From positions 868,001 through 932,000 of the forward strand of contig JBLDXI010000004.1 in NCBI GenBank assembly GCA_047495785.1: DNA of 64,000 nt. The letters run 5' to 3'. Positions within the stretch are counted from its first letter, which is position 1; each line of letters starts with the position of its first letter. Position numbers and translations under genes: made by a program. Shown here piece after piece: positions 5,876 through 45,563 of the stretch. The stretch is from Lepidodermella squamata (Eukaryota; Animalia; Gastrotricha). The notes under the pieces were generated by a model. That model was given only the letters and a program-made list of their open reading frames with translations, did not search any database and was not told the DNA's origin.

Positions 5876-7351
5876 CTAGAGCCTGGCTTCGCTTTTCTCT
5901 CTGCTCTCTCCTCTCAGCTTTTTAATTTCCAGCCAGAATTTTTTGATATTATCATAATCAGTAGGGTTTTCAAGTAATTTGTCCAATTCCGAGAATTCAG
6001 TTTGATCCTTAATAATTTTCAGACGTTCAAGGGCATGATTTTTCTCATTCCTAGCAATTGTGAAATTTTCTCGGTCTATTCGGCCCTTGGTGTAATTTCT
6101 AAAATTTTCTTTCCCTTTTTGAATGATTTGATTGGCCAAAGGTGTCCACCAGGGCGGTTTTTCACTAACTGTGCCCTTTTTCCGTTCACCGCAGGAGGTT
6201 CTGGCGGCGTCCAGAAGGTTAGATTTAGTATTAACCCATGTCTCTTCAATTGAAACAGGGTTTTCGACATTTTTTACAATTTTGTTTGTTAAATTCTCGT
6301 TAAATTTGGTGCTGTATTCCTCGTTCCTAAGCAGATGATGTTTAATTGATTTTGTGATTTCAACCTTTTCTCGTACAAAATTTGGGCAATTAATAACACC
6401 TCTAACAAGCCTATGATCTGATTCAAGGATTGGCGTTTCCTGTATATCACAATTCAGAAATTTGTCCCTTTCTGTTTTATCGACCAAAATATAGTCAAGA
6501 AATGACCTACGTAGCGTTTTTCCACTGCCCCTTTGCCAGGTATAGCCTAAGTTGGGGAAGAACGTGTTGACAAAGCACAAATTATTGCTATTTGCAAATT
6601 CGACCCATAAATTTCCTTTGTCGTTACCTATGCTATCACCATAAGGGCCTACTGATTTAGATTTATTTTCACTTACGACGCGCCCGTTCAAGTCGCCCAT
6701 TATAATGGTGGTGCCTTTTTTTGAATTGACACGAGAAAATTCTTGTTGTAATACTTGGATAAAGGCATCTAGAGATTTAGTACAGTTATTGGCTGGTGCA
6801 TAGACAGAAAGGATGTTAAACATATCGCGATTTACTTTAAGCCTAGCCGATATAATACGTTCATTGATATTTTTGACCTCAATAACTTGTATGTGCTTAC
6901 AACGACGCACATAGAGGCCTGTTCCTGATTGGGCCCTACCATCATTTACGCCGCTGTAGTACAGTGTGCCATGCCTCAGATTTATGTGGCCTTGGCCTTT
7001 TAAGCAGAGCTCTTGTACCGCCACTGCGTCATACATACGAAATTCATAATTTGCTTCCTCTTGTTTCTTATTTAATGTGGTTATGTTTATCGTGCAAATT
7101 TTAAATGCGATCCCAGACTTATCATTATCTACAGGAGTTTGTATATAATTTTCTTCATCAATCGTTGATTGGCGCAAGATTGTTTTACTCTTACTTTTTT
7201 GCCGCTTTTTTAGAATTTTCTTGCCCTTCTTTGCGTTGCCTTCGCCCTCTTCGAAATATTCATCACAGCTAGTTGATAGCACAGATTGATCGTAGTCATT
7301 CAAGTCCGTCAAAAGTTCGAATCTATTTTCGCATGGGGGTGGGTATCGGTC
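5876..7351 (-). pseudogene. LINE ORF2 apurinic endonuclease part
   Basis: TINI, VQE, SVYAP, MGDLNG, YTW, LDYILV and SDH motifs of the APE/EEP fold. Confidence 0.92.
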
Positions 7352-12317: not shown

Positions 12318-12687
12318 AGTCGAAAAATTACAAGCAAGTAGTACAAGCTCAGCTCAGCTCATGGCCACTTCATCTACGCTGCCTTCTTTAGCGTCGGCTA
12401 GTTCAAGTTCAGCTCTAACAACTAATTCTGTGACCACGTCTTCTACGCTACCGTCTTTGGCATCCGTGAGTGACACTGGATCGTCGGTTTCCACCAACGA
12501 AAACCCTGTTGATGTAGCAACTGCAGCTGATGACGACGACGTTTTCAATTGTGATGTTATGCTTCCATCTAGTCGCATGTCGATGGCCGGACCACATTCG
12601 GCGGTATCTCGAAGCCCGAGTGTCGAACCGACTGATCGGCAATCCAATCTTAGTCGTAATTCAGCGAATGAAGATACGATAACGTAA
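12318..12687 (+). other. Orphan Ser/Thr-rich coding-like fragment joined to the inverted transposase arm
   Basis: Open frame with TSSTLPSLAS twice and an acidic DDDD run. No start codon of its own. Confidence 0.4.
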
Positions 12688-16200: not shown

Positions 16201-19200
16201 GTTTTGACAGTATGCTGCTAAAAATGACGAATTTTCCTTATTCTTTTGCAACGAGATTCGAGATGGATGTTTCGGACAATAAAATTTGTCGCCATGTTTT
16301 CGCCATCCATTAGCATAGGGCCCAATGGTCGATTTCATTTTCACATAACAGGGCTAAATCTTCAGTATTTTTTATCTGTAGGCAGGGTTCAGACTAGGTC
16401 CAGCATCCAGCACTGAGGGGGTAAATCGAGCATTTTGAGATCAAAACCCTTACGTTTTCCGAAAATTTTCGAACGCCATGGGGGTTTGTTTACCCCCCTT
16501 ACCCCCTGTCGGACCACTGTCTGTAGGCACCAACATTTCTACCTGCAGGAAGAATCCGAAATTCAGGGCTACACATTGATACAAGGTTTGTTAACAAAAT
16601 TCTACAGAATAAGAAAAATGTGGCCAAGTTTTAAGTTGGACAAAAATTGGAAAATTCGCCGAGCCACTTGTTAACAAGCAAGTACGTAGGAATTGGAAAA
16701 TGAGGTTAAAATCTGAATTCACCACCGGGGTTGTGTCCGCGATACATTTATCGTGATTCAGCTTGAAGTTGCCCAAGTCCGAGAACAGCTTATTCTGTTA
16801 TAGAAAACATTTGATACCGCGAAACCATGCTCTTTGGTCTACGTTACCTGAGTTTGGTCTAGAGGACAAGCAGCGTAGCAAGACGTTCGGTTAGATGAAT
16901 CCTTGCACGAAACGGCATTCTGTCAAAACAAGAATTTGCAAGCTGCGAAATCAGGTTTGTTAACTCACTCCAAGCAGGCAAGTTGCACGGTTGATGTAGA
17001 CCTTGTTCGAGTATTGCTGAGTTTCATTGCTGGTGAAACAGCCAGGGCTTTGCGGACGGCAGTCGTGGAATTTGCGAGATGTCGAGTCGAAACAGCGGAT
17101 GTGAGGCCTTTCGCTTATCGGAACTGTGACTGAAATTCAGAGAGGAGTGTGATCGAAAAAGTTATATATTTTTTGTAATTTATATCAACGTTATAGCAGC
17201 ATTATAATTTTTTGTTCCTGTTTTACGTTGATTGGTGTCATTCATTAATATTATGAGCACCGACAGTTATAAAACATTGAACCTAGTAAAGAAGTGTTAT
17301 CCCTGGTTTGATTTATATTATATTATGTTCTCTTCTTCCTTGAAAGGCAAATTTCTTCGACACTAGAAAGGTACCGTCAACTGGGGTGACTTTGGGCAAT
17401 GGGGTGACTTTGGCGTGCCAAAAATCTAAGATGGCAAGGTAAATACACCGCAAGTGGGTTACCGTTGGATAGCCTGTAGGAAATGAAGTCTAAAAATGGC
17501 ATACGATTTCAATTTTGATCAGACGGCTTCAGTTGGGCAGTCACCAAAGTATTAATAAAAAAATGAATTTTTCGAAATTTTTCCAAAACTTCACCTGCTA
17601 TAATATTTCCTTAGGTGTGTTGCATTGATGTGCATTGTACACATCCAGACTGGCCTTTCCTTGGGCTATCCAATAGTACCCCACTTGCGGGGTATTTACC
17701 TTGCCATCTTAGATTTTTGGCACGCCAAAGTCACCCCATTTTGGAACGTCGAAGTCACCCCACTGCCCAAAGTCACCCCAGTTGACGGTATTGATATGAG
17801 CTGTGGTATTCAGTGGTATTATTTCGGCAAATAGCGCGCTAATGCTCGCGATTTTCTTATACCTTCCAAATATATAGGTCAGCTATATATATAAATTACG
17901 TCCATATATATGTTCTTTCACGAACATCTTTGAAGCGAAATATGCTACTTGTTTCAAGAACACATTGACTAGTTTAGGAAATGAAAAAGATAAAAAAGGC
18001 CGCCGGAGAGGTCATCAAGCTCTTCTTCCTCTTCATCGTTCTCAGCTGCCGATTCGAAATCGCAATCCTCGAAAAGATCACGAGGCGAAAATTGGTCACC
18101 CACCGACGTGGCCACCCTTGTCAGCGTGTTAAAACTGCCCTACAGCAATCAGATCGGTGATAGCTTCATAGCAGTGCTTTGTTCAAAAGATCCATCTGCC
18201 ATCCGCGATCGTGGCCTTGCCATGGAACAGAACAGTTGAAGGACATTTTCAACCTAGAAGCTGTCGATCAGCGATCTATATAAAACAAATTTCCATCCTA
18301 GCCATCCTAGTCATCCTAGTCATTCCTGTCATTTGGGTAATTGTTGTTATTGCTGTTTCCGCTTTTTTTGCTACGCGTTACTAATGCACAGGTAAAATAA
18401 AATGAGAGATGTGCTATTCGATAAATTATTTAGCAATTATTGCCAATATAATTTACAATTATTCCAAATTGTCGAAGGGAATTTTGAGGTGAGTAAGATG
18501 AAAGTAGCTGTATCTGATTGTAAGGGGCAGAAATTCTATGCATTTATTTAATATTCTGAATACTTGGTCATTCTACCCTAGACCTGACTCTATTTATTGC
18601 CCATACGCATAGTTATGTATGTTCATTGTAATAAATAGATGCATCGCTTATTTTTTTCTGACTGCATTTATAACAACTTTATAATGTTGTTATAAAAAAT
18701 TGTTATGTACGATCACACTCCTCAGAATGTGAGCTGTTTACGGTAATTCCTTTTAAAATATTCCATCTTTATTCATCTTGAAATATGGCTAACCAGTAAA
18801 ATCATCGTCGCCTTTGAAAAAACTTAGCGAAGCACTTATGATTCTTCGCTAGCGCGTAGCTCTTAGCCAGCCCTCTCTAACTAGAACCCTCTGTAAATGA
18901 TGCAAACATGTGTCTCTCGAACCTTTGCATCTATGGAGGTCGCACTGTAATTTTGGAAATGACTTTCGATGCAGAGACTTTGATTTGATTTGATTTGATT
19001 GTGATTTGATTTGATTTAGGCCATTTTTTGATTATTTGATTTAGAAAATTTCAGGATGATTTGATTTGATTTAAATTTAGCCCACTTGATTTACTGCTGA
19101 TTTATAAAAATCAGAACTCTCGGAGTTCCCCCAGTTACTAAACATGAGAACTCACATTTGCCTTGAAAACAACTGTTTTCCAAAGCCTGGAGCTATTCAT

Positions 19201-20362
19201 GCCCTTGCATACTCATTCTGCCAAAACCAAGCATGAAATTTGAAAGAATTTACCTTAATTTACCCAGTAATTTACCTTAATATTCATGTTTCCCTATGCG
19301 AAAGATTCGATTTGATTTTATTTAAACGGGCCTGATGATTTGATTTGATTGATTTACTATCGATTTTTGGGGGATTTGGTTTCAAATGATTGATTTACAA
19401 AGACCTGTGATTTACTGAATAAATCAAATCAAATCAAATAAAAGTCACTGTTTCGATGTTCAATTACTTGGACCAAAATGATTGATGTTATAACAGATAA
19501 TATCAAAATAACGCACTCAATCCGTTGGTACAAGACGTGAGATTCGGATACAAAGTCGAATTAGTTGACTCCTGAGAAAAAATCAAGTTGATTAAATAAT
19601 CTTGAAAGCTTGAAAATTGCTCACCCAGTTTTCAGGGCATTTGTACGGGTCAGGGACGCAAGTTTTGATGACGCCGTTCGACATGCAGCGCCTGAATTTT
19701 AACGTCTGAAATGACAAAGGTTAAATCGAATGTCTGATCGGAATCCTAAATTCCAACCTCGAATGCTGCTTTCAGTTTCTCGCATTCGTTGAGGTTATAT
19801 TTCAAGCTCAACGTCGCATTCTGATCACCAAACCAAAACGTCTGAAAAAATCAGAACCATTCAAGAATGAACAAGAAGTATGATCTTCCTTCACCCTTCA
19901 CTCCGATAAAAACTTTTAAGAATTTTTTTGAAGCTTACATTCATATCGCCCGGGTTGTTACAGCCGACGTTTCCGGGTACGCAAAACGGGGTGAGAGCCT
20001 CGTATTTGTAGCACATTCGACCATTCTATAGACAAATTAAAAGTTAAATTGAACATCAAATAGGAGAAGAATAAACGGGCCCCGATGTTGCAACTGCCGG
20101 CTGTTCGGAAAATCGAGCCCCACTATCGATAAAACAGAAAAATTGTACTGTCTTGATCTCGACTGAAAAAAATTTGAAGAGAGCGGAAAACCTGATATTC
20201 GGTTAGTGGATTACAGCCATTGGCAGCTGGATTGCAGCTGGTGAATCGATTGCTGAACTGCGAGAAGCATCGAACACAGTTAACCGGCTGCGTACTCCAC
20301 GCTACGTCGCAATAAGCTAGCATCAGTGCCAAAAGTGCAACATTGAAGCAATAACCAGCCAT
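13216..20362 (-). CDS. Paralog B: 4-Cys-module/CTLD protein (beta-type last exon), TE-expanded introns
   Basis: Exons 20362-20192, 20122-20081 (donor GC), 20025-19939, 19841-19758, 19705-19625, 19571-19517, 17129-16969, 16919-16848, 16794-16723, 13719-13216. Frame intact. CTLD WVGLAPEAGVLKWSDGS...YAVCE. Confidence 0.82.
14313..16189 (-). mobile_element. Internally deleted hAT transposon (ZNF862-like transposase) in intron 9 of paralog B
   Basis: TIRs cagtgttccgaga/tctcggaacactg and 8-bp TSD ggatccgc (14305-14312, 16190-16197). Motifs VDGASVLMG, HCLAHRLEL, DVRW, AECERGFSVMN. The N-terminal part is deleted. Confidence 0.93.
16383..16519. mobile_element. Small hAT-type MITE
   Basis: 8-bp TSD tctgtagg (16375-16382, 16520-16527) and imperfect TIRs cagggttcagac/gtcggaccactg. 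A related fragment lies at ~34077-34165. Confidence 0.8.
17142..18723. mobile_element. Non-autonomous DNA transposon with 14-bp TIRs and 3-bp TSD in intron 6 of paralog B
   Basis: gaggagtgtgatcg / cgatcacactcctc, flanked by aga on both sides. Confidence 0.8.
17374..17788. mobile_element. Nested Tc1/mariner/pogo-type MITE
   Basis: Long TIRs ccgtcaactggggtgactttgggca..., with TA on both flanks. Confidence 0.88.
18972..19450. mobile_element. hAT-type MITE with (ATTTG)n subterminal repeats
   Basis: cagagacttt...aaagtcactg ends and 8-bp TSD tttcgatg. Same family at 55126-56530 and a remnant at ~60440-60740. Confidence 0.88.
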
Positions 20363-20894
20363 TTTGTTGAGCAAATCTTGGTGAAAAAAGTCGAAAATAC
20401 TTTCAAATCGAACGAAAATCAGTCAAACTAAGTGTGGCAACCTGAGAAAATAAAACTCTTTCAAATGATATTCGGATTAAACAACACTCGTCCTATTTCA
20501 CTGTGGACAAAGATTATGTCCTCCTCGTTCAATTATCAAGCAGGCAGTTTAGAAATAATCGCGTGGTTCTAAAACCAGAGCGTTTCGACAATTTGATAAT
20601 TGGCAAAAAATTGTCTTGTCCTATTTCTCTCATTGTCAAAAGGCACGCTTTGCTACAAAAATCGTCCTCTCTTGCTTATTAGCGAATAAATTGGAATTTC
20701 GGACTCCCGAGGACAAGGTCATTTTCCATCTTCAATCGACATGAAATGTTACTAATAAAGTACGATTGATAATTATTTTGCCTCGCATTTTTTCAATATA
20801 ACTCCGTAGCCATGACGAATTCCTAAGAGCGGGTTTCACCAGTCAATCCTTGCAACTCACAATTTCCATTTATTCAGTAAATCGGTACTTGATC

Positions 20895-21149
20895 TGAAGG
20901 GTTGATATCCCTGACCTGGTTCGGGGGAAACTAATAACAGCGATTAGACTGAATAATATACAAGGCAGTTCAGTAAAGCAGATCAACTGATATTTTATTG
21001 TTATTATTTAGGGCTTTTATAGCCAACAGGACGCCAATTGAACTATAATGATGTGCGTCACGTGATATTACTGTCACGAGCGCTAGCTAGAATAATAAGA
21101 ATGGATTACTGAACTAGTAATTGGGACAGGGAACATAGCGATCCTCTCA
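20895..21149 (-). repeat. 3' LTR
   Basis: Direct repeat of 27820-28074. Confidence 0.96.
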
Positions 21150-21251
21150 TATGCCCCTCCCTTACAAGTAAACGTCTTACGTTTTTTTATGAGAACAAGC
21201 AAATTTTTAAAAAAATAAATCACGATTAATCACAGGAGAAAAATTTCGAAG

Positions 21252-21827
21252 TTAGTCTTCAAGCATCTTCATCATAATCATCTTCTTCATGTGTTTTGCC
21301 ATGTCATCGCCAGCTTGCTTTGGCTTCGGACGCCCCAGAATCCCCCAACAGCGGCTGGCAGCATGGCCAAGTTTGCCGCAATTCGAGCAAGGCAGGGCAG
21401 AGCGACGAAAGTAGCCAGCGTCAGAAGTAGAGCCAGGGCCGGGGGGAAGAAGAGCAGCAGGGGCATCCGGTACAGCAGAGGCGGAGACGACAGAGGGCAG
21501 GACAGTGGCAGGAACAGCGAGGGGAGGAGCAGGCAGAAGGGCTTCCTTGAAGGCGGTGGCGATGGCCTTCACAAGGCGGGTCCTGATGGACGCAGACGTG
21601 ACGTGCTGAAGAATCAGAGGGATGAACAACAGCTTCCAGTCTGGTTCGCCACTCAAGGAGGAAGCAGCTTCGCCAACCTGGATCCTAGTGAGGCGGAAGT
21701 CGAAGTTTGCATCGAGGATGCCGTCGGAGGCAAACGCTGCTTGAGCCATTGTTTTGATGAAAAATTCGATTTCGGATTCGGTTGCGGGCAGGGCTGCGCT
21801 GAGTTGGTGCATCTCGATATCAGACAT
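21252..21827 (-). CDS. Gypsy ORF3: 191-aa protein with a Pro/Ala-rich linker and a CCHC zinc knuckle
   Basis: Intact ATG-TAA ORF inside the LTRs containing CSNCGKLGHAASRC. A polypyrimidine tract and TAG lie 1 nt before the ATG. Confidence 0.82.
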   Translation of the reverse strand: MSDIEMHQLSAALPATESEIEFFIKTMAQAAFASDGILDANFDFRLTRIQVGEAASSLSGEPDWKLLFIPLILQHVTSASIRTRLVKAIATAFKEALLPAPPLAVPATVLPSVVSASAVPDAPAALLPPGPGSTSDAGYFRRSALPCSNCGKLGHAASRCWGILGRPKPKQAGDDMAKHMKKMIMMKMLED

Positions 21828-22671
21828 GCTATAGGGAAGTAATTGTCAAGGGTAAAAAAAAACGGGCTGTTTTAGGCCACTTACATGATTAAATAACTGA
21901 AATTCCTTTGAGAAAGCGAAGATAAATATGATTGAAACTGAGAAGGCAGGATGGTTGGTTGAAATTCTGTGAATGTTTGAGGGTTTAAGTAGAGGATTTT
22001 CCAATTATTGGCTGTGTGGCGTAATTATTGATGACAAGGATTGATAGCCATCATTGCACGGATGCCTTATTGCGATCCGGAAATCATTAGCAATTTTAAA
22101 AAAAAATTGAAATTTCTGAAATTTTAGTCATTTCTGTAATGAACCAGTGGAGTTCCATTATAATTAGGCCGAGATAACAAAACGATGCCAAATAATATTT
22201 ACAGTAAAATTTGAATTGCGAATCCCATGATTAACTTATAATGTCCTTTATCATAATCATTTTCCAACCGACAACACTTTAAAGACTGCTCGATGACCTT
22301 GATGTCAAAACCAATTTTCCCTATCCTGGTTTCATGCTTTTATTGCTCATAAATGAAATATGGCATAAACATAGTCTAGCGTTAGAAAAAGTGGCAGATA
22401 CAAAGCTCAACCTGATTTCTGGTGCTAGCCAGGAGTAGAGACACGTTTCCGGTACCAGATTTAAAATTTCGACGCTCAATTTTTCCATTCACACTGTCCA
22501 TTAATCAACACTCATGGCGGATTGCGCAGATTCGTAGTCTTTTATATAGGTACTGAGAAGTTAAGAATAATTTTATTCATTCCAAGAAAATTGGATTAAT
22601 TTATGAAGTGCCAAGTGGCAAACTAATTATATTCACATTATGAAGAGAAGACCTTCAATTATTATTTTTAT

Positions 22672-25600
22672 TCATTTATTTTTTGTATCACTGAAAATGC
22701 TGTTGACAAACGATGAAAACTTCTCTTTAGCAGAGGACAGCAAATTTGTGCCCTTATTTTCGATGACAGGATTTACATCAATATTTCTGGCTTTCGATCT
22801 TGTATTATACTGGTGGGGAACAGTCTTCTGCCCATCAGTAGCCAATATATTCGGGATGGAATAGTCGATAGCTTCTTCTCCTTCTTCTGTCACTTCTTCG
22901 ATAGGATGGAAGATCAGGTGTTCAGGCTGATTTTTCCACAAGTCAATTTTTGAGACATTTACAGTGTCCGTATTAGATTCGCCGAATTTCAGCCTGACAA
23001 TATTAGCGTTATCCGGAAAGACTTCTACAACTTCGAATGGACCCGCGAAGCGGTCACCGAATTTGCCGTCTCGATCAATGACCTTTTTTCGTACCAAATC
23101 ACCCACCTTAAAGGAAATGGGTTTCAAATTGGCATCAGCGCGCTTTTTCCGTGATTCGAAGTCAGCCTTGGCCCTTGTTTGAGCCTCTTTCCAGATTTTT
23201 GACATGATTTTCATTTTTTCTTCAATATACTCCGATGGAGAGGTGGTTTGGGTAATTTTGTTGTCACCGCACATGAGATAAAGTGGATCCTTGAGCTTTC
23301 GCCCAAAGACCATCTCATGAGGACTTACACCCGTGGCTTTGTGAGCAGTAGCATTAAATGCATATGTTACAACATCAAGGTTTTTGTCCCAGTTTTTGCG
23401 GTATTTACGCGCCATCATTGTAATGGTGTCAGCGAGAACCCGATTATACCTTTCCGTTACACCGTCACCTTGAGGATAATAACTCGTAGTTCGGACTTTT
23501 TCAATACCCCACTTTTCACAAAAGTCTTTAATCAGGTCACTTTCAAATTGGGTGCCACGATCAGTAAGTAGAACGTCGGGTATTCCGTACTGCAAGAAAT
23601 AGGACTCAAGGGCATCGGCCGTCGCTTCAGCTGTGATTGTTTTCATTGGTTTTGCTTGGGCGAAGTGGCAAAAATGTTCAACAATCGTGAGGATGTGAGC
23701 ATTGCCCCTTATGGTAGGCGGGTTAATGGGGCCTACGAAGTCAATGGAAACCATTTCGAAAGGTTTCGATGCCATAAGTGATTTCATTCCGCCGCGTAGA
23801 GCTCGAGTTTCGGCTTTACGTTTTTGACAGAGGTCGCAACCTTGGCAATAATGCCTAATGTCCGATGGCATCAGTGGCCACCAGTAATGATCCCTGACAC
23901 GTTTGATAGTTTTATTGCTACCAAAATGACCGCCGGAAGGAGCATCATGGCTTTGGTACATGACGTATTTTCGCCACTCTCTTGGAACAAGGAGTGAAAG
24001 TTCCCCAGTGGGTAGACGTTTGCACCAGGCATTTCCCCGAGAGGGATCTTGTTCAAGGCGATCAAAATTACGCATGATACAATCAATTCGCTTCTTAGTT
24101 TCAGGATTATCAATTTCACCGACTTCTCGAGTGCCTTGTTTTTTGGAATTAATCACAGGTCCTATTTCAGGATCTGTCCATTGAGCCTGACTAAGCTCGT
24201 CAAAATTCCAGCTTAATTCCTTCAAATAGATCAAATGGATGAAATCGGTTTCCTGATCTTCTGAGGGAAAGCATCTCGTAAGTGCATCAGCATATTGATT
24301 CTTTCCTGGGACATATTCTAGTTGAAACTCGAATTCTTGCAACTCCAGCATCCATCGGTTCATTTGAGCATTAGGAGTTTCAAGGGATCTGAGCGCAAGC
24401 AGCGGTTGATGATCAGTTCGGATCACGAAAGTTTGACCCAGCAAATATTGCCTGAATTTTCTAGCTACAGACCAGAAGATGGCATACGCCTCCTTTTTAA
24501 TGGTGGCATAATGTCTCTCAGCCTGAGTTAGACTTTTGCTCGCTGATGCTACAAGCTTCAACTTGCCGTCTACTTCTTGGCAAAGCAAAGCACCGAGTGC
24601 CTCATTAGATGCATCGGTATATAGAATGAAGGGCTTGTTGTAGTTAGGAGGTGTGAGAACTGGAGGGTTCAGAAACGCCTTTTTAACCTTTTCAAAAGAT
24701 TCTAACATCTTATCAGTCCACTTCAATTTGCCTTTGCCTTTGCCACCACCTGTGGCTGCCGTTAACGGTGAGACTAATTCAGCATAATCAGGCACGAAAT
24801 TCCTCAGAAAATTTGCCAGACCCAAAAAGGCTCTCAGCTTCTTGATCGTTTGAGGGGGTTCACAATTTCGAATTGAACTCAATTTGTTGGGATCAGCGGC
24901 TATACCTGATTCAGAAATTATTGTTCCAAGAAACTTGACCTCTTTTACAAGAAACCGGCATTTCTGAGGCTTCAAAAGCATTCCTGACTTGAGAATCCTA
25001 GATAGGACTTCTCTTAGCCTTTCCAACATTTCTTCGATAGTATCGGCCCAAATGTTGATATCATCCTGTAAAACGACGCACGTTTTATATAAGAGTCCGT
25101 CAAGAAGTTGATTCACATAATTCTGCATTTCATTCGATGCATTTTTTATTCCAAATGGCATTCGAGTGAAGCAATACACACCTGATCTTGTTCGAAATGC
25201 CGTTTTTTCTTGATCTTCCTCGCGAAGGGGGATGGTCCAGTAGGCTGAACTAATATCTATTTGGCAATAGAATTTATGTCCAGCTGCGGCTTCGATCAGT
25301 TTAGGCATGTTCGGCATAATTTGGGCTTCTGGTTTCAAAAACGGATTCATAGGTGAAAAATCAATCGTAAATCTGAGCTTATCGCTATCTTTTTTCTTCA
25401 CCAAAACCGGATAAAATGCAAATTGCGCATGAGGACATTCACGAATGATGTTATTCTGAAGCATTTCATTTTTGTGTTCCTCAATAATTACATCTTGAGT
25501 GGGCGAAAAATTCTTCGGTTTGATAACAAATTTGTTAGCATCAGTTTCAGGTAAGAAATCAATTTTATGGTGGACGCCTTTTGCAAGACCCACCTCGCCG

Positions 25601-26373
25601 CGCTTGGAAAAGCATGGGTAATTATCGATAAGATTCATTATTTTCGCTCTTTCCTCAACCGAACTGTCTGGCATCGTTTCTTTCAGAAACTGAGCCCAAT
25701 CAAATTCCTTCTCACACATCTGTGGAACACAAATGCGATCAATGTCCTCATTATTACAAAATTCATCTTCTAGGTCGTTAAACCATTGCTTGCTGTCATA
25801 CGAGATTACAGGAAGGGATGAACCTTTCTCAGTTAAGTACATCGGCAGGTGGTAGAAATTCGTTGGAGTTTCACCGACTAGCAACACAATCTCACCCTTG
25901 GAAAAGCCGATCGATACTTTGGGCATGTTTATGCACCACGTGGTATTCTTGTCATCGTCTTCAAATTTCAAATTGCCATTTTTATGTTCAGTGATAGCTT
26001 TATTATTTTTCAAAAATGTGCGGCCTAGAATAATAGTATCCTTTAAGACCGTGCTAGCGATAATAAAAGTGTCCCTCAGCTTTTTTGTGCCGAGACTAAA
26101 AGTAAGCGTGACTTGCCCTTCATGTGGCAGATCAGTGCCATTGCCGCATTTCAAAATGACTGGGCATTTTTCAATATTTACATCAGTAAGTTGTTTCACA
26201 ACACTCATTGGAATCAAATTGTATTTACATCCCGTGTCGACAACACAAACTTTCTCAATGCTTCCAGGAAGAGTTATCACATAAGCCAGCATATCACGAC
26301 TGCCTTCAGCTTCAGGTGATAAAAGGAAATTATTTACATTAGAAGGGCTCTTTTCGACCTGAGGCACATTCAT
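22672..26373 (-). CDS. pol: Gypsy Pol (protease-RT-RNase H-integrase)
   Basis: VVDTGC; RMPFG and LQDD; YTDAS and TDH; H-x6-H...CDLC, D-D-E and GPF. Confidence 0.96.
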   Translation of the reverse strand: MNVPQVEKSPSNVNNFLLSPEAEGSRDMLAYVITLPGSIEKVCVVDTGCKYNLIPMSVVKQLTDVNIEKCPVILKCGNGTDLPHEGQVTLTFSLGTKKLRDTFIIASTVLKDTIILGRTFLKNNKAITEHKNGNLKFEDDDKNTTWCINMPKVSIGFSKGEIVLLVGETPTNFYHLPMYLTEKGSSLPVISYDSKQWFNDLEDEFCNNEDIDRICVPQMCEKEFDWAQFLKETMPDSSVEERAKIMNLIDNYPCFSKRGEVGLAKGVHHKIDFLPETDANKFVIKPKNFSPTQDVIIEEHKNEMLQNNIIRECPHAQFAFYPVLVKKKDSDKLRFTIDFSPMNPFLKPEAQIMPNMPKLIEAAAGHKFYCQIDISSAYWTIPLREEDQEKTAFRTRSGVYCFTRMPFGIKNASNEMQNYVNQLLDGLLYKTCVVLQDDINIWADTIEEMLERLREVLSRILKSGMLLKPQKCRFLVKEVKFLGTIISESGIAADPNKLSSIRNCEPPQTIKKLRAFLGLANFLRNFVPDYAELVSPLTAATGGGKGKGKLKWTDKMLESFEKVKKAFLNPPVLTPPNYNKPFILYTDASNEALGALLCQEVDGKLKLVASASKSLTQAERHYATIKKEAYAIFWSVARKFRQYLLGQTFVIRTDHQPLLALRSLETPNAQMNRWMLELQEFEFQLEYVPGKNQYADALTRCFPSEDQETDFIHLIYLKELSWNFDELSQAQWTDPEIGPVINSKKQGTREVGEIDNPETKKRIDCIMRNFDRLEQDPSRGNAWCKRLPTGELSLLVPREWRKYVMYQSHDAPSGGHFGSNKTIKRVRDHYWWPLMPSDIRHYCQGCDLCQKRKAETRALRGGMKSLMASKPFEMVSIDFVGPINPPTIRGNAHILTIVEHFCHFAQAKPMKTITAEATADALESYFLQYGIPDVLLTDRGTQFESDLIKDFCEKWGIEKVRTTSYYPQGDGVTERYNRVLADTITMMARKYRKNWDKNLDVVTYAFNATAHKATGVSPHEMVFGRKLKDPLYLMCGDNKITQTTSPSEYIEEKMKIMSKIWKEAQTRAKADFESRKKRADANLKPISFKVGDLVRKKVIDRDGKFGDRFAGPFEVVEVFPDNANIVRLKFGESNTDTVNVSKIDLWKNQPEHLIFHPIEEVTEEGEEAIDYSIPNILATDGQKTVPHQYNTRSKARNIDVNPVIENKGTNLLSSAKEKFSSFVNSIFSDTKNK

Positions 26374-26387
26374 CGACCGGGTATCAT

Positions 26388-26397
26388 CTAGTTTTTT
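26388..26397 (-). promoter_or_regulatory. Predicted -1 ribosomal frameshift heptamer A_AAA_AAC before the gag stop
   Basis: gag ends tcA AAA AAC TAG. The -1 frame (AAA AAA CTA GAT GAT ACC CGG TCG ATG) is open into pol. Confidence 0.85.
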
Positions 26398-27476
26398 GAA
26401 TTACTGGTCGGTTGGTTGCGAGGCTTGGGGCAATTACGTTCAATGTGGTAGCGGTCACCACAGTTAAAGCACCCACGAATACTAGGATCACGCCAGTTTG
26501 TGGTTGCAGGTTGATACTGCTGATTATTCCCACTGACTGCAGTTTGAGGAAATCTCCTATTTTGAAACGGAGCATTAGGAGTGTTGGAATAATTAGGCAT
26601 CTGAGGCCTGCTGGGAAACGCCGAAGGTGGCGGATTGAAAGCATGAGGATGGTTGTAGTACACCTGAGGAGCCTGTGTTGAAACTTGAGGAGTATCAAAT
26701 TGTTTTGAAGCTAATTGTTTCTGAAAATCAGTGAACATATTTTTCAGGTCTGAGACTTCACTTGCTAGCTTCTTGTTTTCCGTTTCAGCATTGGTAACAG
26801 AAGAAGTGACCTTGGAAGGTTTAGGATCCTGACCGCTCAATTGACTTGCAGTAATTGGGCCACTTAATTTAGCCTGAGTATTCTTTTTTTCCCAACTCCG
26901 ATTCTCATTTTCAAGAAGCTGAAGAACCGCCGCATATTCAATGTGAGGATCTTTGTCCCATGCTTCAATCAGAATAGTTTGGATTTTCTTATTCGACATG
27001 CCTCCAATTAAGCATTCTGTGGCCCTGTCACACGCATCTCGTCCACCATTTGGGTAGCCGATGGTGACGAAAGACTCTATCTGTGAGATAAACACATCGA
27101 TATTGTCATTCCCTTGAATAAGCTGCTTCAAAAATACACGGGCAGTGCCCTGAGATACGGCAGTGCCTTCAGGCTGGCAGAGTCTAGCAATTGCCGCATC
27201 GAGAGATACGACACGTTTGTTCAATTCCTGAGCGATAATTTCTGCCCTACGCTTATCGACCATTTTCTGAATGATCCTCAATTGCCTTGGAGCGCCTTTG
27301 ATGTTAAAGACCTCCATATAATATTTCACATCAGAGATCCAAGCATTAAAATTGTTCTCATTGGGGTCGAACTTCTGCACCTTATCATGAAGCTTTAACT
27401 CACTATTAGAGATTTGTTCATCATCCGTGTCGGAGTCCTCACGATTGATGAGAAGAGACCTTCGAAAGCTGGCCAT
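26388..27476 (-). CDS. gag: Gypsy Gag
   Basis: 362-aa ORF upstream of pol with a C-terminal CFNCGDRYHIERNC knuckle. Confidence 0.92.
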   Translation of the reverse strand: MASFRRSLLINREDSDTDDEQISNSELKLHDKVQKFDPNENNFNAWISDVKYYMEVFNIKGAPRQLRIIQKMVDKRRAEIIAQELNKRVVSLDAAIARLCQPEGTAVSQGTARVFLKQLIQGNDNIDVFISQIESFVTIGYPNGGRDACDRATECLIGGMSNKKIQTILIEAWDKDPHIEYAAVLQLLENENRSWEKKNTQAKLSGPITASQLSGQDPKPSKVTSSVTNAETENKKLASEVSDLKNMFTDFQKQLASKQFDTPQVSTQAPQVYYNHPHAFNPPPSAFPSRPQMPNYSNTPNAPFQNRRFPQTAVSGNNQQYQPATTNWRDPSIRGCFNCGDRYHIERNCPKPRNQPTSNSKN

Positions 27477-27536
27477 TTTATTTTAATTTATTACAAAAAT
27501 AAGTTGCACAATGAGTCAACACAGAAAAAAATAATT

Positions 27537-27724
27537 CGACTGGAATTTCCTTCAGTCGTCACAAAACAATTTGACTGGAATAGCCTTTTTCGCAAAATAA
27601 TAATAATGGGCTGGAATTTCCTTCAGCCTTGAAAAATTAGCTGGAATGACCTTCAGCTTTTTTTAAACTTTGACTGGAATGGCCGTCAGTCACAATACTT
27701 ATCAACTGGAATTTCCTTCAGTTG
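27537..27724 (-). repeat. Array of six ~20-nt hairpin repeats in the Gypsy 5' leader
   Basis: Units (+ strand): cgactggaatttccttcagtcg, gactggaatagcctt (partial), ggctggaatttccttcagcc, agctggaatgaccttcagct, tgactggaatggccgtcagtca, caactggaatttccttcagttg. Confidence 0.88.
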
Positions 27725-27819
27725 CCAGAAACAGCTTACCACTGTTTTCTATTAAACTTACCTACTGTTGTAAAGAGATGGTGGAATCGATCGTTGATCG
27801 AGCGGAGTCTCGGCGCCAA

Positions 27820-28074
27820 TGAAGGGTTGATATCCCTGACCTGGTTCGGGGGAAACTAATAACAGCGATTAGACTGAATAATATACAAGGCAGTTCAGTA
27901 AAGCAGATCAACTGATATTTTATTGTTATTATTTAGGGCTTTTATAGCCAACAGGACGCCAATTGAACTATAATGATGTGCGTCACGTGATATTACTGTC
28001 ACGAGCGCTAGCTAGAATAATAAGAATGGATTACTGAACTAGTAATTGGGACAGGGAACATAGCGATCCTCTCA
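27820..28074 (-). repeat. 5' LTR
   Basis: Direct repeat of 20895-21149, followed on the minus strand by the PBS-like motif. Confidence 0.96.
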
Positions 28075-30822
28075 GCTATGTATCAGCGATATGTAGTAAG
28101 CAGATAGGCACAAATAGATCGCCAACGTCAAAGAGCACATGACAAGATCGCCAGCTCGAAGCAACGTCATCCTGCCCCATTTGCCGCATAAATAGATTCG
28201 ACTTTTCAGCCGTCTAGCCATCACTTTGTCCTTAATCAAGTTTGCAGTCACGAAATAGTAGATCGTAACCAGAGCAGTCAAAAAGCTTTTAAGCAGCAGA
28301 AAATCGACAAAATTGATGCGTTGCGGGGTGTGTGGTACGCGCCGAGCTACGTCCACCTGAGCGAAAACAAAAGCGAGTAGGATTGTCGCTGCGAACTCAG
28401 GCCTCTCCTTTTTGCTAGGCGGGATCACGAAACTTCCAATAACAATAGCCATCAAAATTTGGCACGGCGCCAAAATCGAAGTGACATAATAATTTGGATT
28501 CCTCGCAAATTCCAGTCGGAACATTGCGTAGCCTGATCTTCCATACTTCAGCGTTGGCGATTCGGTAATTCCTGATTCGTTATAAGTCCTGACCAGCATC
28601 CAAATGCTGTTATCGTTGATGTTAGGCTGGAGCAGTGTCGTGAATAGAAATGTGACAAAAGCTTCAGGTTCTCGAAGTGCAAAGTAGAAGTCACACCATT
28701 GCCTATCGAATGGGAAATTTGTTAGGTCTATAGTGCATTTCGAGTGCATCGAGTGCTGCCGGTTCCAGTAGAAGTACATGGTTCGGTTCGGTTCGGTGGG
28801 GTAGTACTGGATTTGGATATCACTGCCGATTTGAAGCGATTTGTTGCTCATGTAAATGTCACTCGTGCTATTCATCATCAGGAGCTAAAAATGAAGTAAA
28901 AATAAAATCAATTGAACGAATTTGTAATATTTTGATTTCGTATTATCATTAAATTTCATCAAAAATGGAATTTTCGTAGTTTTTAGTAATTCTCCATTTT
29001 TCTATGAGTTTTGGGATTTTTTTTTAATTTATGGACATTTTCGCAATGCTAATGTTTTCACTTTCCGAAATACAAATTTTGACTAGCATTCGTCTGATTT
29101 TTGGAAATCTTCTAATTTTCGATAATTTTAGTTATAGTGGTATATTTCTCACATCAGGGTGCCAAACTAGAGAAGCATCAGTGACGATAACTCGCTCAGC
29201 TTGCATCGCACCTGGGACCGTGGTATCACTCGGGCACACCGTGCTTTTCCACAGCAAATTTGTAGTCGCAGTAATGGAGATAGTTTGCTTCAAATCGTCG
29301 ACATCCAAGATTCTATCAACCGAAAACGTGAAGATGACCTTTGAAGTCGCTGAACCTTGCGATGATCTAGAATCGGGTTGAATATATGGGCATTCCAACA
29401 GCTCTTCCAGAACTACAGTCGGAATTGCGCTGCCCAGTTGAAGGTTCGGGGTGTAGCTGTAATTCTGAGTCAATCCGTTGACAAGAGACGCAAAAACTTC
29501 ATCGCCATCAAAATCCGAACTTAACGCTTGTGATTGGCTGGTTGACCCATCAGTTGATGAAGTAGCTTGGATGCTCGTTATAGAGCCTTGTTGGTAAATT
29601 GTTATAGGCAGAGATTGGATTGGCGAAGTTCCAGGTGCCAGGCTGTAACCAATCGTGGAATTTAAGATCTGAGTGGCTGTAGTGACTGAACCTGCGATTG
29701 AAGCAACACTGATACTGAACTAGTAGAACCTTGAAGAAAGCTCGAGGTTACTGATTGTTGAGATGAGCTCCCCACATTAGTCCCAACGCTCGAGGAGCCA
29801 ATCGATTGAACCAACGTTGACCCTTGATTGCTCGAACTTTGAGTTGATGATTGGACAACTGAACTAGGTACAACAATCGAGCTCAACGAAGCTGCCATTG
29901 AGCTCAAGGAGCTGCTCGTAGTTGGGCTAGAACTTCCTACTGAGCTGGATAATGCTGTCGAGGTATCCGAAGCTATCGAACTTGAAGATGACGGACCTTC
30001 CGAGCTGGAGCTTGTAAAAATCGAACTTTGGCTTGAAGAATCAGCAGTAGAGGAAGATTCGATTTGGCTAGAAGAATACGTTGAACCAGGGTCTTGAGTT
30101 GCCGGATTCAGAAATGGAACAGAGACTGTTTCCGAAGTAGGAGACGTAGACTGAAGAGCTGAAATCGAGGAGATCGAAGGGCTTGTTGCTTGGGTTGACG
30201 AACTGCCTGCAACAAGATTTGTTTGTTGGCTCGATAATGAAGTCATCAATGATGAGGTTGAGATGCTCAGGCTAGAAGACGTCGCAGCTCCGGTGGAAAG
30301 GCTCGAAGCTGTTGAACCGAGGCTTGAAGTTGTTAAACTCGATGATGAAGCAGACTGGGTAGTAATTACAGTTGTCGATTGAGTCGTAGTCGAAGTTGTA
30401 GAAGTCGGGCAAACTATTGCTGAAGAATTACTCGATAAAGCATCGATTTGAAACACCGAAAGCTGCGAAACAGTGACGGCGTAGTTGTTGTTCTGCCGAG
30501 TCACGTGACTCATTTGAAAATCTAGCCCAGCGACCAGTGAGCTCCCGAACCACGGAACAGGCCAATTGTTGAAGCAAACAACCGGCGTCGATGTGTTTGA
30601 TGCCGCGAATGTGACTAGCAGGTCGTCATTAACAGTTTGAATCGTGAATATTGCCCCGCTTTGAAGTTGAGCGACTGAAGCAGTGCATCGAGCGCAGGAT
30701 ATTTGATAGGGCGGTGGGTACAGTGGGGTTGAGGTTGCGCTAACCGAATAAACTGGGTAAATATCGACTGATGTTGTACCCCTGGCTGCAAGGACTAGAA
30801 ACAGGCCGGAACCAATGATCAT
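28072..30822 (-). pseudogene. Divergent Cys-loop ligand-gated ion channel (nAChR-like) subunit with an N-terminal extension and mucin stalk; one frameshift
   Basis: Exon 30822-29153 (frameshift near 29705) and exon 28884-28072. VWHPD|LLMMNS across the intron, Cys-loop CTIDLTNFPFDRQWC, RNPNYY pre-M1 motif and four hydrophobic helices. Confidence 0.82.
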
Positions 30823-33419: not shown

Positions 33420-35029
33420 TCAAAATATGCCGAATTCTATTTCGACGTTCATCAGGCACATCTCGCCGATCGTTTTGCACTGAAATGACTCGCATAAAGC
33501 GTATGGTCGTTGATCGCCACAATAAGACGATACAGAGAAAGAGCTGCCAGATGCAGAGGCACCATAAAGACGCAGCCATCGCTAACTTGGCCCGACCATT
33601 GATCGGCAACAAATGCGAAATTGGAGCCATCATCCCACTTGAATGCGCCATTCGACCGAGTGGAGAATTCAACACTCGCCTAGCCTCAGCCAGTTCGGCA
33701 TCTGACCTGATCGTGGCTAAGGTACGCCCAGTGTTTGCGCATGAGTTTGCTGCGTCACTTTTAGCGGCATCTTCGCTCAGTTCCACCGGGGAGTAAGACT
33801 TAACCACAGATGTACAACGGGTCTTGTCCGGATAGATGGCATTAGCGGGAATTCGAAGCTGGCTGGCCGCATCGCAGCCAGTTGTATTCGCAACACATTG
33901 TTGTCAACGCAACGGAAATAGGCCGCCTGCAAATAAAAAGCGCATGATAGCGCGTCTCAATTAAAGTCTAACTATGAAGGAACCCCGAGCATACGGTCAA
34001 GTTTGATCGGTGAGGATGAGTTGGTAATTCGGACGGTTGGCGAAAAATCGGTGGTTCGACTTGTTGTAGCTCTCAATGGGTAAATCGAGCATTTTGAGCC
34101 CGAAATTTGCAAATCATTAAGGGGGACCCTTACGTTTTTCGAAAATTTTCAAACGAAAGGGGGTCGAAGACTCCTTTGAATGTGCCATAACCACAAACCG
34201 GGTGTGAAATTTCGAATTTCTAAAAGCGAACCTACCGCATATATCATCGATGCGCTTCTCATAATTCAGCTGAAACGTTTGCAAGTCCGCGAACAGCTTT
34301 TCCTGTCATGGGAACGGTTGATAGAGGCAAAACTAGGCATATGTGTTAGTCAGCGTCACCTGCGTAAGGTCTCGAGGGCAGGCTGTGTAGCAAGACAGCT
34401 TTTGCGACGCATCCTTGCACGAGACAGCATTCTGGACAAAAAGCGATTAAAATTACGAATTATTTTCAAGAATATAACTTACTCCTAGCAGGCAAGTCTC
34501 GCGATTGATGTACACTCTGGTCGAGAACTGCCGAGTCTCAATGCTAGCATAGCAGCCAGTGCTCTGCGGTCGGCAGTCGTTGAACTTTCCGGTGGCCGAA
34601 TCAAAGCAGCGAACATGAGGCTTTTCAGTATCGGGAACAGCGGCTGAAATAGCAATAAGTCACAAAACTGTCTTTAATTGCTCAATATCCACTAACCCTC
34701 TCCGTTTGTACAAGACGCAAGATTGGAATGCACAGTTGTTTCGGTGACCTATAATCAAAAAATAAGCTAATCATCACGAAACCGAAGAACATGCGGCTCC
34801 AGCGATGTTGCTCACCCAGTTGTTAGGGCAGGAATACGGGTCTGGAACACAGGTCTTGGTGACGTTGTTCGAGGTGCAGCGCCTGAACTGCAAACTCTGA
34901 AAAATTTAGCGTGCGAATTATAAAAAAATATATGTGAAGTTTCGAAATTCTCACATTGAACACGGCTCGTTTCTTTTCGCACTCGTTGAGGTTGAATCTC
35001 AAGTTGACGAGTGGATTAGAATTCCCAAA
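33420..35029 (-). pseudogene. Paralog C: pseudogene (exons 4-10 only, alpha-type last exon)
   Basis: Exons 4-9 are recognisable. Exon 10 has frameshifting deletions near 33897, near 33662 (loses WVGL) and near 33535. Exon 9 has Cys>Arg. Exons 1-3 were not found upstream. Confidence 0.85.
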
Positions 35030-42720: not shown

Positions 42721-45563
42721 TCATTCAACATAGGTTTCGCAAAATCCGTACTTAGCAGTAACGGCGCAAAAAGTTGGAACCAAACGTAATACCGATGGTA
42801 GACTATTATAGATTATACAATTGTTATTATTAGGTTCAGCATAAAACACAGCTGGATCGTATGTGAAAGCCGACCCGTCCGACCACTTAAGGACTCCTCC
42901 GGACTCATCTGCAGCAAGACCAACCCAGCCATTAATGGAGTAGCTTGCAATCACGGCTAGGTCGGCAGCCGTTTTAACAGTTGCCAAGATGCCATCCAGT
43001 TGCGAGCACTTTGCGGCTGCAGCCGAATGATTCAAAGTACCGCTGGGGTTATTAACATAAAACACTGTCTTTCGAGCGTTTTGACACTGCGATTCGCCAC
43101 TGAACGTAACATTTCCAGGGAAGCGTCTCTCAGTATCGGCGTCACAGCCGCTTGAGCTCGGTCGGCAGGTTACTGAACCATCAGCAGCTCGCAGGCATCG
43201 ATGGTAAGAGATCTACAAACATAAATCAATCATGTTTAGCGTTGATCGCGAACTAATTAGCGATAATATGTTACTAAAATGATTCACGCAAAATAGCAGC
43301 GTTGATTACTACCAAATACCAAACCCTGAAATATTTAAGGAAATAAACTCACAGGAGGCGATATATCATTGATGCATCTGTCGTGATTCAGGTGGAAGGT
43401 CCCCAAGTCAGAGAACAGCTTAACCTGTTATAGAAAAACTGTTGATTCCGGAAAAAGACGTGCTTTTGGTTTAGCATTATTACCGGAGTTTGATCTCGGG
43501 GGCAAGTGGCGTAGCAAGACGTTCGGTTGGATGAATCCTTGCACGAAACGGCATTCTGTTCAAAATATTTATGTGATTACCAAAAAGATAATTCGTTAGA
43601 TCAAAACTTACTCCAAGCAGGCAGCTTTCTTTATTGATGTACACCCGCGTCGAGTACTGCCGAGTTTCGTTGCTTGCGAAGCAGCCGGAGCTTTGCAGTC
43701 GGCAGTCGTTGAACCTTTCGGTCGCAGAATCGAAGCACCGAATGTGCGGCTTTTCGCTATCCGGAACAGTGACTATCATAAACAAAAATTTTAGCAGTTT
43801 TTTATCCGAATTCTTTAGTTTTTAGTTCAAGCACTAGGAACAAATTTGGAATAAACGGACATCCAGGAAATTAGGATTGGCTTTAAGTCTCCACCAAGAC
43901 AAAATTAATCCTACCTTCACTTCGGAAAATCGATATTGCACAGAAATCAAAGAGGCGAAATGGTTATAGGGTTTTTTAATCACGCCTAGGGCCCAGCTTC
44001 ATCCTTGAATGAGAAAATCATGAACCTTCTCCATTTGTACAAGCTGCGAGATTTGGATAGATCGTCGATTCAGTTACCTGTTGGCAAGAAACGATAAGAA
44101 TATGTCACATGAAAGCTCACTTTCTTGAAGTCAACATGCAGCGCAAAGTTTATATATATATTCTTGAAGCCCACGACTTCCCCTCTCCAACAATTTATTA
44201 ATTTCAAAATGTCGCAGATTACGTAACATTCATGACGCTAAAATCGATCGATCTAGCTAATGTTTGATCAGCTGCTAGCAATCACCTGTTACGTACCCCT
44301 ATAAAATTCCTTAATTATGAAAGTTCCTGGATGATCATGTTCTGCAATTTACTACTCGAAATGGAAAACTGCAAAAATATCAGGGTTTTCGCCGCGTGAA
44401 ATCGAAATTTAAAATCGCTAACCCAATTTGACGGACATGAGTACGAGTTCGGAACACAGCTCATGGTGGCATTGTTTGAGGTGCATCGTTTGAATTGCAG
44501 GTTCTGAATAAATAGATAATAGACAAGGCTGTAACAGATGGGAAACCATCTCTCCATACTGTTTTTATTCGAGGTATTATTGCGTGTCACGTGACCACAT
44601 TTTAAACAAACGAACACCCAATTCGACCATAATAATTTTATATAATTTCAAAATCAACAACAAAAAAGGGTCACATATGGTTCAATCATTTCCATTTCCT
44701 GCTAAATCTGATTTTTTTTTAATTTGGAAAAATCAGTATATCCATGTTGAAAATTTTCTCTATTGTACGATATACAATTTGTCTGCTAAATAACATTGAT
44801 TTTTAGATTGTTTTTTTATTATTATTTTCGGCCGAGCAAATTGACTTCGAATTATCTCACTGAGTTGCTTTGTTTAGAGCAAAAACAAAAAATAGTTAAG
44901 GTCAGGAAAAAGTCACTATGGAGAGATGGTTATTTTCCTATCTGTTACTGTGTTTTCTATGTAATTCATATAGAACTTAATAGAACATCACGTTTATAGA
45001 GTTTCTCCAATATTAACCTCAAATACGGCTTTGTACTTCTCGCATTCGTTGAGGTTGAATCGCAAGTTCATCATTGGGTTTGACTTGGCGAACCAGAACA
45101 ACTGAAAATAAATTAAAACCAAAGCTTCATCAATAAGTAAATTGGCACTAGATCTTACGGGTAATCTGCCCGGGTTGTTACAACCGATGTTAGCAGGCAC
45201 GCAAAATGGAGTTAGCTTCTCGTATTTGTAGCACATTCGGGCATTCTGTAATTGAGAGATATAATACTGTGAACGGTTAGATACCAATCTCACCCCACGA
45301 TTGCACACTCCGGCTCTGCGGAAAACTGGACCGAGCTAGATAATGGGAAATTCCAAGTAAAAGTGGTCGCGGATTGACAATAAAAATAAACCTACGCGGT
45401 ATTCCCGTAGTCGATCGCAGCCATCGGCAGCTGGTACGCAGTTGATGAATCGGTTGCTAAACTGCGAGAAGCACCGAACCCAGTTCAACGGCTTCCCCGC
45501 AGCAATGTCGCATGACGCCAGCACGAGTGCTAGCAGTAGTAGAGCACAGTGATACGAAATCAT
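42721..45563 (-). CDS. Paralog D: intact 4-Cys-module/CTLD gene (beta-type last exon, EPN motif)
   Basis: Exons 45563-45396, 45335-45294, 45245-45159, 45101-45018, 44503-44423, 44077-44026, 43772-43612, 43555-43484, 43424-43353, 43212-42721. All GT-AG with frame intact. Confidence 0.88.

Follow-up and report, generated by a model that had tools for sequence, protein, structure and literature searches.

Among the closest described systems are the leader arrays of Drosophila gypsy-group long terminal repeat (LTR) retrotransposons. The gypsy insulator comprises 340 bp of the 5′ untranslated region (UTR) with 12 Su(Hw) motifs, the 5′ UTR of gtwin carries six short repeats, and the leaders of ZAM and Idefix contain regulators (PMC3383448). 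For Ty elements, the packaging signals are described as undefined (PMC4974528). In this study, we describe an array of six short units in the leader of a Ty3/Gypsy-type element of the gastrotrich Lepidodermella squamata, situated on the minus strand at 27537-27724 of a 64,000-nucleotide stretch of contig JBLDXI010000004.1 (hereafter the window). The array shares the layout of the gypsy-group leaders, in which tandem short motifs (6-12 copies over 200-340 bp) with A/T-rich spacers lie between LTR and gag. The present element belongs to another lineage, however (the identity of its Pol to anything found does not exceed 47%), and is likened to them by layout; moreover, co-varying palindromic arms such as those of its units are not described for them. 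More generally, the array resembles a gypsy-group leader array, a retroviral psi element or multi-stem-loop packaging signals, with membership in none of these established, and no tandem row of near-identical hairpins whose stems co-vary was found for a Ty3/Gypsy leader in the literature searched.

With a probability of about 35%, we interpret the units as hairpins on the genomic sense RNA that show a motif to a zinc-knuckle protein, marking the unspliced RNA. Here we infer RNA, and not DNA, as the active form, together with the stems in vivo, the ligand, the splice and the function. A single copy of the element cannot settle whether the units are RNA hairpins or DNA sites for a host factor.

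The array is defined by the 11-mer GGNNATTCCAG, with six copies on the minus strand (at 27540, 27575, 27611, 27641, 27674 and 27706). The whole 64-kb window holds seven copies where 0.44 would be expected, a count reached in 0 of 100 shuffles. In sense order, successive units are 32, 33, 30, 36 and 35 nt apart; a preliminary description of this locus had reported six units spaced by about 30-36 nt, in agreement with these steps, and the bounds it gave for the array are exact. The spacers are 77-100% A+T, compared with 58% for the element overall. Three units match a longer core, CTGAAGGAAATTCCAG, exactly, and two others match it with 2-3 mismatches. The units are as follows:

27703-27724, minus strand: unit 1, CAACTG-10 nt-CAGTTG, core CTGAAGGAAATTCCAG
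27671-27692, minus strand: unit 2, TGACTG-10 nt-CAGTCA, core CTGACGGCCATTCCAG
27639-27658, minus strand: unit 3, AGCTG-10 nt-CAGCT, core CTGAAGGTCATTCCAG
27609-27628, minus strand: unit 4, GGCTG-10 nt-CAGCC, core CTGAAGGAAATTCCAG
27575-27590, minus strand: unit 5, a half unit without hairpin, its 11-mer GGCTATTCCAG intact and its 5′ arm lost
27537-27558, minus strand: unit 6, CGACTG-10 nt-CAGTCG, core CTGAAGGAAATTCCAG

Unit 5, the fifth in sense order, has AAA where the others have CTG, and its flanks are non-complementary. The consensus proposed in the preliminary description fits the five full units as written and fails for this one, which has neither the CTG arm nor the hairpin. A covariance model of the six units scored unit 5 at 27 bits and the remaining units at 35-40 bits. 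Run over the whole window with filters off, this model retrieved only those six, the next best match reaching 13 bits (E ~0.5), and by the same model no dispersed copies of the array are present in the 64 kb. Tandem Repeats Finder reported nothing between 27000 and 28300, because the spacers are unrelated to each other. From the excess of the motif over shuffles, and from the covariance model finding only the six units, we therefore conclude that the array is real, non-random and, within the window, restricted to its leader site.

Five of the six units have perfect palindromic arms of 5-6 bp around a 10-nt centre, with CTG and CAG fixed. At the two arm positions outward of CTG/CAG, all five full units are Watson-Crick paired and all four A-T and G-C combinations occur, while the third outward position is paired in three of the five; of the 15 variable arm positions in the five full units, 13 are complementary. 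At least three paired double changes fall in 20 arm positions, compared with five changes in 80 core positions. The covariation score on the unit alignment, which compares paralogous units in one element copy and not independent lineages, was 0.367 against 0.184 ± 0.062 in shuffles, and was reached by 1 of 500. Paired cells made up 80.6%, and 14-42% when the partner was slid by 1-3 columns. There are about 11 distinct other CTG-N10-CAG sites in the window, and at least two extra pairs flank just one of them. The compensatory outer-pair changes claimed previously are thus borne out, with covariation above that of the shuffles. Even for paralogous units, the observed paired changes are hard to get without pairing, and the covariation of the arms speaks for pairing within a single-stranded form of some kind. 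A cruciform in duplex DNA was also considered and rejected, a 10-nt centre being unfavourable to it.

That the units act instead at the DNA level, as six 11-mer sites for a host DNA-binding factor that form a downstream enhancer or an insulator/boundary past the LTR promoter, is nearly as likely as the hairpins on sense RNA. An arrangement of copies at intervals of 30-36 bp, or about three helical turns, with A/T-rich spacers and located between LTR and gag, matches the layout of the gypsy leader array, and the leader regulators of gypsy, gtwin, ZAM and Idefix are precedents for such a role (PMC3383448). Unit 5 also retains its 11-mer exactly though its 5′ arm and its pairing are gone, and throughout the array GG, ATTCC and AG are invariant around two variable central bases. 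One candidate factor, for three of the units, would be a dimer of the Rel/NF-kappaB type: the 10-mer TGGAATTTCC is present in units 1, 4 and 6, the same 10-mer in four copies makes up an NF-kappaB reporter element (PMC5331596), and it is listed among potential p65 sites (PMC2879527). However, that listed 10-mer was unbound in chromatin immunoprecipitation (PMC2879527), the kappaB-like 10-mer is found in just three of the six units, with units 2, 3 and 5 differing at two or three central positions, and a chance likeness of a 10-mer to some factor site is easily obtained. More fundamentally, a protein that reads the duplex conserves bases, not complementarity, and 10 of 10 complementary positions have a chance of about 0.001 even if each position is only purine/pyrimidine-constrained. 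Structurally, the dyad of the arms lies between core positions 8 and 9 and is offset from the axis of the inner 9-mer palindrome at position 10; as the two do not coincide, the arms are unlikely to be protein half-sites. A further parallel for DNA-level sites comes from the Sireviruses (Ty1/copia), whose non-coding regions hold clustered short palindromic repeats that combine a constant core with variable extensions in symmetry and are read as transcriptional cis-elements (PMC2829016). Unlike the present array, these clusters are situated upstream of the LTR TATA box and near env, have a different core, and belong to plant elements of another superfamily.

That the units are paralogues within one copy would also suit an array without a function of its own, that is, a palindromic unit amplified by slippage, the arms of which were corrected by hairpin-templated strand switching (quasi-palindrome correction). 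Template switching is frequent in reverse transcription, the identical cores of units 1, 4 and 6 suggest recent duplication, and one unit (unit 5) is already decaying. Nevertheless, the inner mismatches ought to have been perfected by such correction as well, and the core is instead asymmetric and invariant. In the decaying unit, too, three bases are missing from one arm while the nine fixed bases of the 11-mer are all present, and the regular spacing, the uniform A/T-rich spacers and an ATG-free leader point to selection. We consider this explanation distinctly unlikely.

Several observations weigh against the hairpins on sense RNA that we favour. As sense RNA, the 221-nt stretch folds with a z score of +1.18 (matched or bettered by 182 of 200 shuffles), single units reach a marginal −5.2 to −7.3 kcal/mol (z −1.1 to −2.1), and the stems pair with probabilities of 0.1-0.68 when the whole 343-nt leader is folded. 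In every unit, an A·C mismatch directly follows the CUG/CAG pairs. On the antisense RNA (the plus strand of the window), there are stems of 7-8 bp with 6-nt loops, the array has a z score of −2.96 (1 of 200 shuffles), and single units go down to z −3.9 with pairing probabilities of 0.85-1.0. The homodimer of the array, as would be relevant to dimer linkage, has no extra stability (−8.1 versus −9.8 ± 2.3 kcal/mol in shuffles). That unit 5 keeps its 11-mer without a hairpin points to sequence-specific recognition independent of the stem, and the element is a single copy whose five full units are paralogues. Rfam 15 gave no meaningful match to the array, with no match in the window at the gathering score and, at E up to 10 over 27400-28100, only two chance-level small nucleolar RNA matches. 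From the literature, the studied tandem motif arrays in Gypsy-type leaders act on DNA (PMC3383448), and clusters of palindromic repeats known from other retrotransposons have been interpreted as transcriptional elements (PMC2829016). The proposal in the preliminary description that the sense RNA is structured was not confirmed, given the 221-nt fold and units of −5 to −7 kcal/mol. Its reading of the covariation as the signature of a selected structure survives in so far as the arms would pair in one single-stranded form or another, of which the antisense strand folds better.

This strand difference raises the question of whether the other strand is the one used, either as hairpins of an antisense transcript or as hairpins of minus-strand complementary DNA (cDNA) in reverse transcription. 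The antisense RNA folds far better (RNAalifold energy −5.73 kcal/mol, versus −2.67 kcal/mol on the sense strand), because the sense A·C mismatch becomes a G·U pair on the antisense strand, found in all six units and beside an A-U pair in five of the six. However, as one core is common to all units, the bias is one observation and not five. With DNA energy parameters the strands are alike (z −1.22 and −1.41), so a role in cDNA gains nothing; that neither strand stands out in this respect counts in favour of DNA-level sites. In addition, an antisense transcript is purely hypothetical here, the antisense leader contains 4-6 ATG, and no role for such hairpins was found in the literature searched. 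Use of the other strand therefore seems to us quite improbable. A small-RNA precursor was rejected as well, the stems being just 5-8 bp. In favour of hairpins on the sense RNA, the leader as a whole contains 10 perfect small hairpins, compared with 4.5 ± 2.3 in shuffles. A search for long-range pairing found no complements of the motif of note on the sense strand elsewhere in the element.

The leader in which the array is placed, and the splice predicted for it, have the following features:

27820-28074, minus strand: 5′ LTR, TG...CA, containing TATAAAA (LTR position 129) and AATAAA (position 151)
27801-27818, minus strand: stretch like a primer-binding site (PBS), starting TGG two bases past the LTR, assigned by reading
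27787-27801, minus strand: perfect 6-bp hairpin with a 3-nt loop, just past the PBS
27756-27765, minus strand: putative splice donor with the consensus CAGTAG/GTAAGT, the exon ending at 27762 and the intron GT at 27761-27760
27729-27747, minus strand: perfect 6-bp hairpin between donor and array, its 7-nt loop carrying a second donor-like GGTAAG
21828-21860, minus strand: splice acceptor predicted by consensus, a pyrimidine run followed by AG (21830-21829)

The donor lies 37 nt upstream of unit 1 and the gag ATG is at 27476, so that the array falls wholly within the predicted intron, from 27761 to 21829. In line with the preliminary description, which had placed the array between the donor at 27761 and the gag ATG, both positions are correct, and the array occurs only in the part of the leader that would be removed by the predicted splice, with donor use judged from the consensus. 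The AG of the predicted acceptor ends at 21829, one base ahead of the ATG of a third open reading frame (ORF), ORF3, and on this consensus the ORF3 mRNA would have the array spliced out. Exon 1 of that predicted mRNA is non-coding and has no ATG. Indeed, the entire sense leader from the TATA-proximal region to gag contains no ATG where 6.5-7.9 would be expected (P 0.0002-0.002), the upper value referring to the approximately 440 nt of 27477-27915 (7.9 expected, P ~0.0002), the antisense strand of which has six. Therefore, the first AUG of the predicted spliced RNA would be that of ORF3 and ribosomes would come to gag by scanning across the array, which places the sense RNA under selection as a scanned leader.

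In its position, the array is comparable to the retroviral psi, a packaging and dimerisation leader to which the nucleocapsid zinc knuckles of Gag bind (PMC5035971). Psi and, by prediction, the array have hairpins downstream of the PBS with unpaired loop purines, and Gag ends in a CCHC knuckle; in addition, the present array sits between the PBS and the gag start and is absent from the predicted spliced RNA. Unlike the tandem near-identical units found here, however, psi consists of different stem-loops with long-range pairing, and the present array is by prediction marginally stable, with no extra dimer stability. Nor does psi occupy one universal position with respect to the splice donor, that of Rous sarcoma virus being upstream of the donor.

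The same position bears on intronic splicing control, in which the repeated ...AUUCCAG after CUGA[A/C] would serve as acceptor-like decoys or as a silencer, sparing the genomic RNA. An element that produces a subgenomic mRNA must limit its splicing, as retroviruses do. The array is within the intron, immediately past a consensus donor with the first unit 37 nt on, each unit ends in a pyrimidine-rich CAG, and the second donor-like GGTAAG is exposed in the hairpin loop between donor and array. Against this, the pyrimidine stretch is a mere 3-4 nt, the branch-like A is only about 11 nt from the AG, paired arms would hide CUG as well as CAG, and the covariation is left unexplained, which makes splicing control very improbable in our view.

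If the units are hairpins on the sense RNA, as we favour, the array would be a multivalent docking platform on the unspliced (genomic) RNA. A conserved loop on variable stems is the usual pattern of protein-binding hairpins. Five hairpins, each with a 5-6 bp stem and a 10-nt loop, would stand on A/U-rich single-stranded linkers, provided by the A/T-rich spacers that would hold the units apart. Every hairpin would show the same loop, A-[A/C]-GG-NN-AUUC, with the two G unpaired, and the sixth copy would offer the same motif without a hairpin. The likeliest ligand would be the zinc-knuckle protein of the element itself, namely the nucleocapsid (NC)-like end of Gag, with ORF3 less likely. Bound next to each other, several copies of the ligand would single out the intron-containing RNA for packaging or for another fate reserved to unspliced RNA, the ORF3 mRNA being without the array, and the weakness of the hairpins would let ribosomes scan the AUG-free leader to gag. 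A related idea exists for Idefix, in which, to go by the title of work by Meignin and colleagues from 2003 (cited in PMC3383448), the 5′ UTR and Gag reportedly form a switch by which the genomic RNA is either translated or left untranslated; the likeness is one of idea, an interaction of Gag with the leader that decides the fate of the genomic RNA.

The proposed platform also resembles the packaging stem-loops of RNA viruses, including MS2, hepatitis B virus and picornaviruses (PMC6281560, PMC4751978, PMC7612645), which have weak, variable stems and one loop motif. There, the shared loop motif gives multivalent contacts with the capsid protein. Those signals are spread genome-wide, however, whereas here six units are found in 190 nt and none elsewhere in the element, and the genetic elements are unrelated.

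With respect to possible ligands, the element encodes three proteins:

26388-27476, minus strand: gag, 362 aa, with a C-terminal CCHC knuckle
22672-26373, minus strand: pol (protease, reverse transcriptase (RT), RNase H, integrase), in the −1 frame relative to gag
21252-21827, minus strand: ORF3, 191 aa, an orphan with an Ala/Pro-rich linker and a CCHC knuckle

Judging from sequence, the CCHC knuckles of Gag and ORF3 could bind nucleic acid. The Cys/His spacing of both is directly readable, and their zf-CCHC matches are below the Pfam cut-off (14.2 and 16.4 versus 20.8 bits). Solved-structure searches with Gag and ORF3 gave non-significant NC-knuckle matches only. Word-based search found no relatives of gag and no homologues of ORF3, and for ORF3 an exhaustive HMMER search of 1.84 billion representatives returned only two weak matches, on the linker and knuckle. 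ORF3 has no Pfam family above cut-off, its AlphaFold model is poor (pLDDT, the confidence score of the model, 45), and its G+C content is above that of the element. A weak likeness to gag concerns the Pro-rich linker and knuckle of the gag C-terminus (E 0.003, in a single comparison). Membership in the Errantivirus group (gypsy proper, insect elements that bear env) was considered and rejected, ORF3 being a 191-aa protein with a knuckle only and not an envelope glycoprotein, with no long ORF or match in the 845 nt that precede it. This stretch between the pol stop and ORF3 (21828-22671, minus strand) has no ORF longer than 55 aa and no Pfam match, and ends in the long pyrimidine run and predicted acceptor.

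A small accessory protein from a predicted spliced mRNA, together with a multi-site RNA element confined to the intron, is reminiscent of Rev and the Rev response element (RRE). The RRE is a large branched element, however, whereas the present array is a row of tiny hairpins, and ORF3 is an orphan without a sequence or fold link and without a named match. Sequence and solved-structure searches likewise gave no relation between ORF3 and any known RNA-export adaptor. The suggestion of a psi- or RRE-like element, made in the preliminary description, accordingly keeps the psi-like position in the leader, while the marginal sense stems and the lack of export-adaptor relatives of ORF3 stand against the rest of it. 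A modular Rev/RRE-like or psi-like circuit, in which Gag NC or ORF3 would read the row of five hairpins and decide on splicing, export, translation or packaging, is in our opinion rather unlikely. The feedback switch through ORF3 or Gag put forward in the preliminary description would be a case of such a circuit and has the same low probability.

Cis-acting RNA signals of Ty3/Gypsy elements are poorly defined. If the units do act as RNA, a compact, modular array present on unspliced RNA only would make a clean natural candidate for a signal of this kind, and the element has an unexplained ORF3 with a knuckle besides. If they act as DNA, the leader enhancers and insulators of gypsy, ZAM and Idefix would gain a palindromic variant, possibly of the Rel type, and the array would bear on the effect of the insertion on neighbouring host genes. 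In either case caution is warranted, as covariation among paralogous units in a single copy, together with a better antisense fold, is insufficient to call a sense RNA structure.

The element as a whole is young and apparently intact. Its remaining features are:

20895-28074, minus strand: whole LTR retrotransposon, 7180 bp, recognised by direct repeats, domain order and open frames
20895-21149, minus strand: 3′ LTR, a 255-nt direct repeat
21154-21163, minus strand: putative polypurine tract just upstream of the 3′ LTR, assigned by reading

The two LTRs are 255 nt each and 100% identical, and no stop or frame break was seen in the gag, pol and ORF3 frames. LTRs with TG...CA ends, the PBS-like stretch, the purine run and the Pol domain order identify the element as Ty3/Gypsy-type. 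The Pol matches to Pfam, at residues 43-123, 325-486, 552-681 and 796-967, follow the order protease, RT, RNase H and integrase. The nearest Pol relative in the protein collection is 47% identical and others are 39% or less; the named matches are generic Ty3/Gypsy polyproteins from spider, fishes, mollusc, Daphnia and fungi. Between gag and pol there is a short overlap (26374-26400, minus strand) with a slippery-type A-rich heptamer just ahead of the gag stop, which is the layout of a programmed frameshift and not a frame break. There are no tRNA genes in the window.

The element lacks a target-site duplication, the five bases outside each LTR (20890-20894 and 28075-28079) being different, for which recombination between copies or an assembly join are possible causes. 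A search for a paralogous empty insertion site found nothing, and the window holds no other copies or fragments of the element, only host segmental repeats. On the minus strand, a 268-aa ORF (28072-28878) is open into the first bases of the 5′ LTR and has a 60-aa match, at the Pfam cut-off, to the ligand-binding domain of neurotransmitter-gated channels; the element may sit in or beside a Cys-loop receptor gene. Together with the non-LTR retroelement nearby, this receptor fragment speaks for an animal host. The host segmental repeat has a period of about 17.5 kb (approximately 1000-2150, 16700-20290, 34300-34900, 43300-45500 and 60100-62150) and comprises several 100-250-nt families of 3-5 copies each with 60-92% identity, the element being situated just past one copy. 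Further off in the window lies a non-LTR retroelement with RT and endonuclease ORFs (4005-7312, minus strand), beside which is a perfect 1724-nt inverted repeat (8442-10165 and 10598-12321) with 300-nt perfect direct repeats inside the interval 8442-12321. A second cluster of perfect repeats, at 51179-53807, includes a 418-nt inverted pair (52137-52554 and 53270-53687) and a 300-nt direct pair (51483 and 52563).

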